Of a stretch of 64,000 nucleotides of DNA, positions 44,956-48,163 are shown one piece after another (positions within the stretch are counted from its first letter, which is position 1; each line of letters opens with the position of its first letter). The notes beneath the pieces were generated by a model, which worked only from the letters and a program-made list of their open reading frames with translations, was not told the DNA's origin and ran no database searches. The DNA comes from Macrostomum lignano (taxonomy: Eukaryota). A program made the translations under genes and the position numbers. The stretch is taken from NCBI GenBank assembly GCA_002269645.1, contig NIVC01000092.1, positions 310,001 through 374,000 on the forward strand, written 5' to 3'.

Positions 44956-47900
44956 ATGAGTCAGACTGCATCCTTCATCTACCTGTTGAGGCTGGCCGCT
45001 TCTGTCGCAGTCGCCGCTGCAGCTGTTACTGACGTAAGTTCTATCGGGTGTCATGCTGTGGTCATGGGTTCTATCTGGTGTCATACTGTGGTCATGGGTT
45101 CTATCGGGTGTCATGCTATGGTCATGGGTTCTATCTGGTGTCATACTGTGGTCATGGGTTCTATCGGGTGTCATGCTATGGTCATGGGTTCTATTGGGTG
45201 TCATACTGTGGTCATGGGTTCTATCGGGTGTCATGCTGTGGTCATGGGTTCTATTGGGTGTCATGCTATGGTCATGGGTTCTATTGGGTGTCATGCTGTG
45301 GTCATGGGTTCTATTGAGTGTCATGCTATGGTCATGGGTTCTATCTGGTGTCATACTGTGGTCATGGGTTCTATCGGGTGTCATGCTGTGGTCATGGGTT
45401 CTATTGGGTGTCATGCTATGGTCATGGGTTCTATCTGGTGTCATATTGTGGTCATGGGTTCCATCGGGTGTCATATTGTGGTCATGGGTTCCATCGGGTG
45501 TCATGCTATGGTCATGGGTTCTATCTGGTGTCATATTGTGGTCATGGGTTCTATTGGGTGTCATGCTATGGTCATGGGTTCTATCTGGTGTCATATTGTG
45601 GTCATGGGTTCTATTGGGTGTCATGCTGTGGTCATGGGTTCTATTGAGTGTCATACTGTGGTCATGGGTTCTATTGGGTGTCATGCTATGGTCATGGGTT
45701 CTATTGGGTGTCATGCTGTGGTCATGGGTTCTATTGGGTGTCATATTGTGGTCATGGGTTCCATCGAGTGTTATATTGTGGTCATGGGTTCTATCGGGTG
45801 TCATGCTATGGTCATGGGTACTATTGGGTGTCATATTGTGGTCATGGTTTTTATCTGGTGTCATGCTATGGTCGTGGGTTCTATCGGGTGTCATGCTATG
45901 GTCATGGGTTCTATCGGGTGTCATATTGTGGTCATGGGTTCTATCGGGTGTCATGCTATGGTCATGGGTTCTATTGGGTGTCATGCTGCGGTCATGGGTT
46001 CTATTGGGTGTCATGCTATGGTCATGGGTTCTATCTGGTGTCATACTGTGGTCATGGGTTCTATCGGGTGTCATGCTGTGGTCATGGGTTCTATTGGGTG
46101 TCATATTGTGGTCATGGGTTCTATTGGGTGTCATATTGTGGTCATGGGTTCTATTGGGTGTCATATTGTGGTCATGGGTTCTATTGGGTGTCATATTGTG
46201 GTCATGGGTTCTATTGGGTGTCATGCTATGGTCATGGGTTCTATCGGGTGTCATGCTATGGTCATGGGTTCTATCGGGTGTCATGCTGTGGTCATGGGTT
46301 CTATGCGGTGTCAGTTATTGTTTTGCTCCAACCGCAGCCAAGTGTTATGCGGTGCCCCTGCGCATACCTGGAGCGCGGCGGATTTTGGGACTCCCCGACG
46401 GCCGTCAGTCTGGGCGTCTCCGACCGGGTGTACAGGGAGAGACGGTGCAGCTGCCAGCACGAGGTCAACTGCGACTGGAGCTGGATAACCACCGACAAAT
46501 CCATCACACTGACCTGGCTGGGATCTGAGGGTGAGACAGACAGACAGACAGACAGACAGACAGACAGACAGACAGACAGACAGACAGACAGACAGACAGA
46601 CAGACAGACAGACAGACAGACAGACAGACAGACAGACAGACAGACAGACAGACAGGCAGGCAGGCAGGCAGGCAGGCAGGCAGGCAGGCAGGCAGGCAGG
46701 CAGGCAGGCAGGCAGGCAGGCAGGCAGCTCAACGCCAACCCGCAGACATCCGAGACAGTGAAATTCAGCTGCAGTTCTGCGCTCCGATTTTCCGACCCGG
46801 CGCCCCGCTCTGCCCGACCAGCGGCGGTGGCGCCTTCGCGCTGCGCCAGACGGGCTGGTGGATCGACCTGCACGAGGCGCCCCGGTGCCGCTGCGCGGCC
46901 GAGACCGGGCCGGCCAGCATTCGGAGATTTCGCTACGCTGAGCCGCTGGAAATGGGAGAGAGGCTGCGCAACCAGATTGTGGAGTTCGCCTGCGGCAGGA
47001 TGGTGAGCTGATGAGGACTGATCCATGGTTCTAAACTTGTAGTTCCAAATCGGTCAAATTATCTTTTTAATCCCAATCTGAATTGAGAGCTGCAATCTCA
47101 AATCCAAACAACCTTACGCTCGTTAATCCCGAATCCAGATCCTCTATTCAGATCCCAAAATTCAGATCCCTAATTTAGATGCCCAATTCAGATCCCCAAT
47201 TCAGATCCCCAATTTCGGATCCCCAATCCAGACCCCCAATTTCGGATCCCCAATCCAGATCCCCAATTTCAGATCCCCAATTTCGGATCCCCAATCCAGA
47301 TACCCAATTTCGGATCCCCAATCCAGATCCCCAATTTCAGATCCCCAATCCAGATCCCCAATTTCGGATCCCCAATCCAGATCCCCAATTCAGATCCCCA
47401 ATCCAGATACCCAATTTCGGATCCCCAATCCAGATCCCCAATTCAGATCCCCAATTTCGGATCTCCAATCCAGATCCCCAATTTCGGATCCGCAATCCAG
47501 ATGCCCAATTTCAGATCCCCAATTCAGATCCCCAATTTCGGATTGCCAATCCAGATCCCCCATCCAGATCCCCATTTCAGATCCTTAAACCAGATCCTTA
47601 ATTCAGATCCCCAATTTCGGATACCAAATCCAGATCCTAAATTCAGATCCCAAATTCAGATCCCCAATTTAGATCCCCAATTCAGATTCCCAATTAAAAT
47701 CCCCAATTCAGATCCCCAAACCAGATCCCCAATCCGATCCCATAGTTCAGATCCCAAATTCAGATCCCCAATTTAGATCCCCAATTCAGATCCCCGAACC
47801 AGATCCCCAATCCGATCCCATAGTTCAGATCCCAAATTCAGATCCCCAATTTAGATTCCCAATTCAGATCCCCAATCCGATCCCCCAGTTCAGATCCCAA

Positions 47901-48163
47901 CTTTGTGCCCGCAGCCCCCCTGCGACGCAGCCCAGCCCTGCTACGGGGAGTCGCTGAACAAACAGGGCAGACGAACGGGCGGCCAAGTGTTGTGCACCTG
48001 CCCGCCGGACACCTACTGTCCGGTGTACACCGGCCAGGGTGCTCGGACAGTCCCGGCGGATCCGACGCCAGAAACCAGCAATTCCACGGCCGAGGCCGCA
48101 GCAGAGGAGCTGAGCGACACGGGACAGCGCATAGAGCTGCTCTGTGTGACGGCTGGTCCGTGA
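44956..48163 (+). CDS. argos: Secreted cysteine-rich Argos/giant-lens-like protein, ~258 aa, 4 exons
   Basis: Exons 44956-45033 (GTAAGT donor), 46338-46530, 46746-47002 and 47915-48163 total 777 nt in frame, with CCGCAG acceptors. Hydrophobic leader, then 16 Cys in three modules: ..RERRCSC....C.W...DKSITL..; QFCAP..PLC...CRC...AEPL...EFAC; C....PC...LCTCP....CP...LC. The pattern matches the Drosophila Argos C-terminal domains as I remember them; no HMM was run. Confidence 0.72.
45038..46312. repeat. 30-bp minisatellite (CTATCGGGTGTCATGCTGTGGTCATGGGTT), argos-like intron 1
   Basis: About 42 tandem units. Confidence 0.97.
46534..46725. repeat. (GACA)n(GGCA)n microsatellite, argos-like intron 2
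   Basis: Read directly. Confidence 0.97.
47130..47900. repeat. Degenerate CAGATCCCCAATT minisatellite, argos-like intron 3
   Basis: Direct degenerate units. Confidence 0.9.

Follow-up and report, generated by a model that had tools for sequence, protein, structure and literature searches.

A four-exon Macrostomum lignano gene for a predicted secreted DUF5731 protein with remote homology to Argos

Gene structure and annotation of the locus

The window, a 64,000-nt stretch of Macrostomum lignano contig NIVC01000092.1 (positions 310,001 to 374,000, forward strand), contains an intact four-exon gene at window positions 44956-48163 on the plus strand. The spliced coding sequence (44956-45033, 46338-46530, 46746-47002, and 47915-48163; 777 nt) encodes 258 amino acids with a single terminal stop; GT..AG dinucleotides are canonical at all junctions, introns 1 to 3 are in phases 0, 1, and 0, respectively, and the start codon (ATG at 44956) lies downstream of an in-frame TAA two codons 5'. 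The four-exon gene model is confirmed, as described in an earlier note on this DNA: the four short exons that splice in frame into a 258-residue protein, the leader, and the 16 cysteines are all present in the sequence, and every peptide string quoted in that note is found in the translation. The features of the gene are as follows.

44956..45033 (+), exon 1: start codon and signal-peptide-like leader, residues 1-26, MSQTASFIYLLRLAASVAVAAAAVTD; donor GAC/GTAAGT, phase 0.
45034..46337 (+), intron 1: 1304 nt, phase 0; nearly all a 30-bp minisatellite (42.5 copies, 45038-46313).
46338..46530 (+), exon 2: residues 27-90 and base 1 of codon 91; acceptor ..CCGCAG/, donor AGG/GTGAGA; bulk of the N-terminal cysteine domain (Cys 32, 34, 63, 65, and 71), with the family motif CAYLERGG and the motif RERRCSC (aligns with ERQCRC of Argos).
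46531..46745 (+), intron 2: 215 nt, phase 1; (AGAC)n then (AGGC)n throughout.
46746..47002 (+), exon 3: residues 91-177, middle domain (Cys 102, 113, 138, 140, and 173); donor ATG/GTGAGC; the Pfam DUF5731 match begins in this exon.
47003..47914 (+), intron 3: 912 nt, phase 0; 13/27-bp tandem array x58 (47126-47898).
47915..48163 (+), exon 4: residues 178-258 and stop; C-terminal domain (Cys 179, 185, 203, 205, 211, and 253), with LCTCPPDTYCP, equivalent to LCQCPKGHRCP of Argos.
Within 47915..48163 (+), exon 4 insert (approximately residues 215-243): acidic and Ser/Thr, Macrostomum-specific, low-confidence in the structural model, with one NST sequon.

Tandem repeats make up almost the entire length of all three introns, which agrees with their earlier description as minisatellite introns. 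The observation that the last exon alone is visible in the open reading frame (ORF) track also holds: in the program-made list, exon 4 appears as a clean 86-aa ORF (47903-48163), and exons 2 and 3 sit inside long repeat-derived ORFs. The long ORFs that span the minisatellites (e.g., 44956-46488 and 45648-47006) were dismissed as translation through the repeats. In the public annotation, the locus has only a 99-aa stub (BOX15_Mlig014039g1, 46952-48163) that starts at M160 (46952), a truncation that is easily explained by the minisatellite-filled introns and that the present analysis corrects. The gene had been called hidden, and this is accurate for the window locus but not for two sister loci, at which a four-exon, 258-aa model is annotated as "hypothetical protein". 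The sister-locus exons, with splice sites identical to those in the window, translate exactly to the annotated 258-aa PAA-type entry BOX15_Mlig013187g1, and the repeat unit of intron 1 is also present at one sister locus (L001; 34.5 copies). Exons 1 and 2 are 97.4% and 98.4% identical, respectively, to those of the sister loci. The orthologue of Opisthorchis viverrini likewise has a four-exon plan, in which introns 2 and 3 occupy the same codon and phase as in Macrostomum; the exon junctions are independently supported, since the sister loci and this orthologue have matching exon plans. An exact-sequence look-up of the window protein among transcript contigs gave no match. UniProt calls P0002 and P0003 "H(+)-exporting diphosphatase" and "IF-2-like"; both names were discounted, as the two sequences are predictions, frame-shifted or chimeric, from the same gene. 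A literature search on three M. lignano locus tags found no paper that mentions them.

Protein features and the flatworm family DUF5731

The leader of the encoded protein has a hydrophobic core (residues 7-24) followed by AAA-V, and the Kyte-Doolittle 15-aa mean peaks at 2.1 over residues 10-24. No other hydrophobic stretch was found in the 258-aa protein, and the orthologues likewise start with hydrophobic leaders. The protein is predicted from its hydrophobic leader to be secreted, without a membrane anchor.

The protein scores highly as a full-length member of Pfam PF19002 (DUF5731; E = 4.6e-40, 136.9 bits vs. a gathering cut-off of 27.1), with profile positions 1-108 of 108 aligning to residues 91-200. 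All aligned relatives (22/22) also match DUF5731. The other Pfam candidate, CART, fell below threshold (E = 0.093, 13.4 bits vs. a cut-off of 27), and there was no match of the window protein to Pfam UPAR_LY6 or to toxin families. A full HMMER scan (1.84 billion representatives), together with a profile search, retrieved flatworm proteins only; the genera represented were Macrostomum, Schistosoma, Fasciola, Paragonimus, Opisthorchis/Clonorchis, Calicophoron, Mesocestoides, Hymenolepis, and Cichlidogyrus. The libraries searched, whose coverage of triclad proteomes is not established, yielded no triclad (planarian) member. The family is conserved across free-living (Macrostomum) and parasitic flatworms (blood and liver flukes, tapeworms), and the trematode, cestode, and monogenean orthologues share the exon plan of the window gene. 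Other members have 14 conserved cysteines, whereas the Macrostomum proteins keep C32 and C63 as well, which brings them to the 16 of Argos, and also carry a disordered C-terminal insert. DUF5731 is listed in Pfam as a domain of unknown function, and no link between DUF5731 and Argos is stated in the literature searched.

Homology to Argos

Drosophila Argos/giant-lens (PF11581; PDB 3C9A and 3CGU) resembles the window protein in being a secreted protein with three small β-sheet "two-finger" domains, and the two share the motifs R-x-C-x-C, C-x-P-[IV], CRC, FAC, xPC, and LCxCPxxxxCP. The earlier note had recognized that Argos motifs map in order onto the protein, and had proposed an Argos/giant-lens-like secreted protein in an apparently non-arthropod genome, with flatworms in mind. 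The flatworm guess is correct, and the proposed homology and fold are supported by BLASTP, hhalign, Foldseek, and the 16 cysteines. BLASTP against the Argos crystal construct produced a 141-aa alignment (23% identity, pairwise E = 6e-4) in which all cysteines line up, namely the nine in domains two and three. The Smith-Waterman score against Argos was 73, compared with 33.9 +/- 5.3 for shuffled sequences (z = 7.4), and none of 1000 shuffles reached the real score. Profile-profile comparison, which had been suggested as a check, aligned the flatworm family with 26 arthropod Argos proteins at 97.5% probability (hhalign; E = 7.3e-12, 168 columns); a larger alignment gave 96.7%. Controls, one set reversed and 30 with shuffled columns, scored 10-21 against the real 84.7, with probabilities of at most 1.3%. 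The hhalign match leaves the first ~28 mature residues uncovered, and the second and third domains are the best-conserved stretches between DUF5731 and Argos.

The hmmscan against Pfam Argos that the earlier note had proposed was negative: PF11581 gave no match at E ≤ 10 for the window protein, which falls in DUF5731, or for any of 22 family members, whereas the same model scores the Argos crystal construct itself at 227 bits. Searches of all PDB sequences with the protein (phmmer) and with the family profile (hmmsearch) also returned nothing at E ≤ 10. Overall identity to Argos is ~19-23%.

The cysteines correspond in number and order (16 vs. 16) to those of the Argos core. The intervening gaps are 1, 28, 1, 5, 30, 10, 24, 1, 32, 5, 5, 17, 1, 5, and 41 residues in the window protein, and 5, 14, 1, 5, 21, 8, 24, 1, 26, 7, 5, 20, 1, 5, and 26 in Argos, with identical CxC, x5, and x24 spacings. 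Gene structure agrees in part: the flatworm gene and the beetle and millipede argos genes have four coding exons each. Introns 1 and 3 are in phase 0 and occupy the same place, within 1-3 residues, as in the beetle and millipede argos genes: the former just before the first cysteine, and the latter in the same inter-cysteine loop (FAC...C). The position of intron 2 differs from that in arthropod argos, although beetle and millipede also differ from each other in this respect. In other features the proteins diverge. Fly Argos has a long flexible N-terminal region and a 119-aa insertion in the first domain, both of which the flatworm protein lacks, and the flatworm protein differs in its N-terminal motif (CAYLERGG) and in an insert of its own within the last finger.

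Two AlphaFold2 models of the protein (pLDDT 64 and 74.4; pTM 0.61 and 0.73) both contain ~12 strands in three groups. In Foldseek searches of the PDB (350,542 chains), a comparison also called for by the earlier note, the only chains below E = 1e-3 for the two models were those of Argos (3c9a_A/B and 3cgu_A/B; E 3e-5 to 9e-4, probability 1.00), with the next match at E ≥ 0.4. The conotoxin Tx33.1 (PDB 9FRQ), which like the three-finger/Ly6-uPAR proteins has small disulfide-stapled β-finger domains but comprises two domains only, was the fifth match for model 1 and non-significant (E = 0.41); uPAR chains were also non-significant (E 3.3-3.7, TM 0.17-0.19). Global TM-scores to Argos were low (0.31-0.38; rmsd 10.5-12.7 Å), and the predicted three-domain arrangement does not superpose globally on the crystal clamp (3C9A); hinge flexibility between the domains, or error in the models, could be the cause. 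Remote homology and fold similarity of the flatworm family to Argos are supported by these results.

Proposed role and alternative readings

Argos is the textbook case of inhibition of a growth-factor pathway through sequestration of the ligand rather than blocking of the receptor, and was long believed to be confined to insects. We know of no Argos-like protein outside insects with a demonstrated EGF-binding function. A structural survey has since extended the Argos fold to many protostomes: its main text predicts Argos-like three-domain proteins across protostomes and lists molluscs, nematodes, tardigrades, arthropods, and one annelid, but names no flatworm member, flatworms being cited only as having EGFR signaling (Khilji et al., 2025; Protein Sci e70333, PMC12514838). 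The survey comprises ~1800 hits and 12 clusters of "two-finger toxin" (2FTX) proteins. A literature search that combined Argos with flatworm terms found nothing beyond this survey. The surveyed Argos-like 2FTX proteins (e.g., C. elegans M6.4 and proteins of Capitella and Aplysia) are like the window protein in having a signal peptide and three 2FTX domains with no long linkers, and modulation of EGFR ligands may be hypothesized for both.

We consider it likely, with a fair margin for doubt, that the four-exon gene encodes a secreted DUF5731 protein belonging to a divergent Argos/2FTX branch, with Argos-like ligand binding as its inferred activity. By analogy with Argos, the protein would be released from the cell and would bind, between its second and third domains, the EGF domain of one of the worm's own EGF/neuregulin-type ligands; the bound ligand would be kept from EGF receptors, and signaling would be damped or shaped. 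Such sequestration of an EGF ligand, which the earlier note had also suggested, is plausible, and candidate targets are present, since M. lignano has two EGF ligands and eight EGFRs (Barberan et al., 2016; PMC4914847).

Three other readings bear on this proposal. That the Argos resemblance is convergent or due to chance, in a cysteine-rich secreted protein with merely Argos-looking cysteine spacing, would be in keeping with the lack of any link to Argos by HMM-to-sequence methods, and spurious alignments are common among cysteine-rich proteins. We nevertheless regard this as very improbable, given that the composition-preserving controls collapse the hhalign and Smith-Waterman signals, that Foldseek singled out Argos with two separate models, that each of the 16 cysteines has its counterpart in Argos, and that the positions and phases of introns 1 and 3, if not of intron 2, are shared with arthropod argos. 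It is somewhat less improbable, but still unlikely, that, in a polyploid genome, the window copy is a duplicate that has fallen silent or is decaying, with expression from the sister loci only. The stub annotation and 12 aa differences from the sister protein, among them an indel patch in the C-terminal insert, could be taken as signs of decay; window-specific residues include S6, V24, V29, L112, and P184. Against this, the ORF of the window copy is intact, none of the six splice sites differs from its sister-locus counterpart, 16/16 cysteines are kept, and the minisatellite introns easily account for the truncated annotation; synonymous differences from the sister copy exceed nonsynonymous ones (eight vs. 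five), which shows purifying selection between the gene copies.

The most serious competitor, although we hold it to be rather unlikely, is a true Argos-superfamily (2FTX) fold with another job: an extracellular partner of another kind (e.g., a different growth-factor-like module, an ion channel, or a receptor), or a flatworm-specific role. Three-finger and two-finger toxin folds often bind other extracellular partners. The low identity to Argos, the failure to match PF11581, and inter-domain geometry that is not reproduced in the models are all compatible with such a role, as is conservation of the family in Neodermata with one disulfide fewer. The 2025 survey considers EGF binding unlikely for the related two-domain conotoxins, and reports that knockout of C. 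elegans M6.4 gives no phenotype (PMC12514838). What argues for Argos-like ligand binding instead is that all three domains are kept, including the third, that the second and third domains are the best conserved between the two families, and that EGF ligands and expanded EGFRs are present in the same animals. In Argos itself, the third domain is required for Spitz binding.

Flatworms, including parasitic ones, probably have an Argos-type regulator, and a Pfam domain of unknown function now has a concrete, testable hypothesis. The behavior of neoblasts in planarians and of germinative cells in Echinococcus is under EGFR signaling. Both RNAi and transgenesis are feasible in M. lignano, and the prediction is therefore directly testable in this organism. 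Tentatively, and with more doubt than confidence, DUF5731 may be to flatworms what Argos is to insects, a secreted protein that mops up EGF-type ligands and would tune the expanded EGFR system controlling flatworm stem-cell differentiation; in parasites (Schistosoma, Fasciola, Opisthorchis/Clonorchis, Paragonimus, and Hymenolepis), EGF-family ligands of the host might likewise be captured where host and parasite meet.

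Gene model and tandem arrays at the locus

The gene in the window comprises four exons on the forward strand, and in the region read (44500-48700) an in-frame TAA lies two codons 5' of its start codon.

Exons of the window gene
44956-45033, +, exon 1, ATG at 44956; donor GAC/GTAAGT
46338-46530, +, exon 2; donor AGG/GTGAGA
46746-47002, +, exon 3; donor ATG/GTGAGC
47915-48163, +, exon 4, ending in a TGA stop

All three introns end in (C)CGCAG, and their phases are 0, 1, and 0. Splicing yields a CDS of 777 nt with a single, terminal stop, encoding 258 aa with 16 cysteines and a hydrophobic N-terminus (Kyte-Doolittle 15-residue mean up to 2.1, approximately residues 10-24). 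Assembly of the exons proposed in the earlier note exactly reproduced the in-frame protein, leader, and cysteine count described there; at the sequence level the four-exon model is confirmed, with predicted junctions. The last exon is, as had been remarked, the only one visible as an ORF: exon 4 is a clean 86-aa ORF in the mechanical ORF list, and exons 2 and 3 are merged into repeat read-through ORFs. The introns described as minisatellites were identified by Tandem Repeats Finder as near-complete tandem arrays in all three cases (a 30-mer ×42.5 in intron 1, (AGAC)n/(AGGC)n in intron 2, and a 13/27-mer ×58 in intron 3), and arrays also flank the gene on both sides. The 64-kb window holds 38 Tandem Repeats Finder rows scoring ≥200, some of which overlap and describe the same array.

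Tandem arrays in the introns and flanks
43413-44395, upstream flank, 21-bp unit
45038-46313, intron 1, 30-bp unit
46534-46727, intron 2, 4-bp unit
47126-47898, intron 3, 13/27-bp unit
48206-48853, downstream flank, 22-bp unit

At every position of a 21-kb stretch, the window agrees with Macrostomum lignano contig NIVC01000092.1 (assembly GCA_002269645.1). The public annotation of the locus (46952-48163) contains only the 99-aa BOX15_Mlig014039g1, which begins at internal Met160 in exon 3 and takes the exon 3/4 junction, and from which exons 1 and 2 and most of exon 3 are absent. This truncation, which the four-exon model corrects, is probably due to the tandem arrays in the introns and flanks. 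The gene is therefore hidden, as the earlier note had claimed, at the window locus, but not at two sister loci on other M. lignano contigs (L001 and L002), where the full model is annotated. Two UniProt names within the same gene family are misleading, namely ‘H(+)-exporting diphosphatase’ (protein P0002) and ‘IF-2-like’ (protein P0003), both of which belong to frame-shifted or chimeric predictions.

The sister loci share 95.6-98.4% exon identity and six of six splice sites with the window gene, and their four blocks, when joined, give the annotated 258-aa protein exactly; the nearest database protein is M. lignano BOX15_Mlig013187g1 (258 aa, 95% identity, full-length coverage). Repeat units and their placement at the sister loci (L001 5000-9997) are as in the window, with different copy numbers; introns 1-3 measure 1064, 579, and 343 nt, vs 1304, 215, and 912 nt in the window, a 1.2- to 2.7-fold ratio between copies. 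Once a short indel-bearing stretch of the C-terminal insert is set aside, five nonsynonymous and eight synonymous changes separate the window gene from a sister copy, a sequence comparison consistent with purifying selection acting on each of the two.

The annotated neighbors in the window are a phospholipid scramblase (~37617-42256, +), a class I/II aminotransferase (~50830-54331, -), and a 78-aa WSC-domain protein (57393-57629, +). L001 likewise has the scramblase on its upstream side, and L002 the aminotransferase on its downstream side, and from these shared neighbors we infer that the gene copies are segmental or homeologous duplicates, which are expected in M. lignano as a hidden polyploid. 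A second M. lignano gene of the family, BOX15_Mlig014663g1 (281 aa), is about 40-41% identical and keeps 16 of 16 cysteines; its divergence implies at least two Argos-like paralogue types in this species, each multi-copy (comparison based on M. lignano proteins P0016, P0005, P0017, and P0010). Elsewhere in the window, ORFs at 28759-29687 (-) are a fragment of an LTR retrotransposon pol gene, containing integrase domains of the retroviral type (Integrase_H2C2, rve) and an RT-associated RNase H, and an uninterrupted 499-aa ORF at 33314-34813 (+) has only a weak C2H2 zinc-finger match, under the Pfam cut-off.

The DUF5731 family in flatworms

By hmmscan, the window protein matches the whole of Pfam PF19002 (E = 4.6e-40; 136.9 bits, cut-off 27.1), titled ‘Family of unknown function (DUF5731)’, and has no other significant Pfam match. 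Of 1.84 billion cluster representatives scanned in full with HMMER, only 14 proteins matched, and a profile search of a 5.8-billion-protein set matched 17; in both, the species-named matches are flatworms only: trematodes (Opisthorchis, Clonorchis, Paragonimus, Fasciola, Calicophoron, Schistosoma, Trichobilharzia, and Heterobilharzia), M. lignano, Mesocestoides, Hymenolepis, Rodentolepis, and the monogenean Cichlidogyrus. No member from either scan could be assigned to triclads (planarians) or polyclads, with the Logan contigs P0011, P0015, and P0154-P0156 falling outside the species-named set. Triclads and polyclads have expanded sets of EGFRs and EGF ligands.

Fourteen cysteines are conserved throughout the family alignments; the additional C32 and C63 occur only in the Macrostomum proteins and one further sequence, and one cysteine pair is lost in parasitic flatworms. 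The Opisthorchis viverrini orthologue also has four exons (156, 184, 251, and 201 nt) in phases 0, 1, and 0, with introns 2 and 3 each at the aligned codon that they occupy in the window gene. In the larger flatworm alignment, Hymenolepis/Rodentolepis proteins P0009, P0024, and P0025 carry an insertion of ~21 residues between the equivalents of window C65 and C71, and Drosophila Argos carries a 119-residue flexible insertion in the equivalent loop, where insertions are apparently tolerated in either lineage.

Relationship to Argos

Direct sequence searches gave no match to Argos: with hmmscan run up to E = 10, PF11581, the Pfam model of Argos, was matched neither by the spliced protein, for which such a match had been proposed as a check, nor by any other DUF5731 member, and phmmer with the window protein and hmmsearch with the family profile found nothing at E ≤ 10 among all PDB sequences. 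Four more sensitive tests (pairwise, profile-profile, fold search, and cysteine pattern) agree on a link, and a fifth, gene structure, agrees in part. With the 3c9a_A crystal construct from PDB as reference (PF11581 match, 227 bits), BLASTP of the mature window protein gave an alignment of 141 residues (23% identical, pairwise E = 6e-4) with all second- and third-domain cysteines in register, and the Smith-Waterman score was 73 against 33.9 ± 5.3 for shuffles (maximum 59 among 1000). In hhalign, the flatworm alignment matched 26 arthropod Argos proteins at a probability of 97.5% (E = 7.3e-12; 168 columns), from RERRCSC/ERQCRC through the last cysteine (96.7% with the larger flatworm alignment); the first ~28 mature residues, including the family motif CA[YW]LERGG, lie outside this match. 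Controls in which one or the other alignment was reversed, or in which the Argos columns were shuffled (30 shuffles), scored 10-21, against 84.7 for the real pair, with probabilities of ≤1.3%; cysteine richness alone is therefore insufficient to explain the match.

AlphaFold2 models of the full-length protein (pLDDT 64, pTM 0.61) and, from a deeper alignment, the mature protein (pLDDT 74.4, pTM 0.73) both contain approximately twelve strands in three groups. Among 350,542 PDB chains searched with Foldseek, the Argos chains 3c9a_A/B and 3cgu_A/B were the only matches below E = 1e-3 for both models (E = 3.3e-5 to 8.6e-4, probability 1.00), the next being the two-finger conotoxin Tx33.1 (E = 0.41) for the first and noise (E = 1.6) for the second. 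Global TM-scores to Argos are low (0.31-0.38; rmsd 10.5-12.7 Å), so the likeness lies in the domains and the order in which they follow one another and does not extend to the clamp geometry of the models.

Sixteen cysteines in identical order are present both in the window protein and in the Argos core, with successive gaps of 1,28,1,5,30,10,24,1,32,5,5,17,1,5,41 and 5,14,1,5,21,8,24,1,26,7,5,20,1,5,26, respectively; spacing is identical for all three CxC pairs and the x5 stretches after them, as it is for x24. Beetle and millipede argos genes each have four coding exons. Their first cysteine is preceded, at a distance of a few residues, by a phase-0 intron, and a second phase-0 intron falls in the FAC-to-next-cysteine loop; flatworm introns 1 and 3 agree with these in phase and, to within 1-3 residues, in place. 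Intron 2 is positioned differently in flatworms, but also differs between beetle and millipede. The homology proposed in the earlier note is thus upheld, and the DUF5731 protein of the window is very probably an Argos homologue with an Argos-like fold.

Proposed function and significance

In Drosophila, the Spitz EGF domain is clamped between the domains of Argos, and EGFR signaling is inhibited in this way (Klein et al., 2004, 2008, as cited in PMC12514838). The window protein combines a secreted-type leader with three Argos-like domains, and the family is deeply conserved across Platyhelminthes, in which potential partners are encoded: eight EGFR genes and two EGF-type ligands in M. lignano, three EGFRs and one ligand in S. 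mansoni, and three EGFRs and two ligands in E. multilocularis (PMC4914847). By analogy, we tentatively propose, at slightly under an even chance, that the protein would be secreted from the cell and would sequester an EGF or neuregulin-type ligand, so that EGFR signaling would be restricted in range or amplitude. The main rival is that the Argos-like fold serves a different partner: function has been tested for no Argos-like protein outside insects, and no phenotype is reported for C. elegans M6.4 (PMC12514838).

The two-finger toxin (2FTX) fold takes its name from Khilji et al. (Protein Sci 2025; PMC12514838), who reported ~1800 secreted Argos-like proteins in protostomes (molluscs, nematodes, tardigrades, arthropods, and an annelid), speculating that some modulate EGFR signaling; flatworms enter their text only as EGFR-pathway animals. 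An EGFR-pathway survey covering Metazoa and planarians leaves Argos unmentioned (PMC4914847). DUF5731 and the locus tags have no mention in the searchable literature. Given the silence on flatworm members, the Argos-less survey, and the Pfam label of unknown function, the equation of DUF5731 with the Argos superfamily appears new within that literature. DUF5731 is a divergent extension of the published Argos-like pattern and no new kind of system; its assignment offers a concrete, testable function for a flatworm-wide family that includes medically important parasites.
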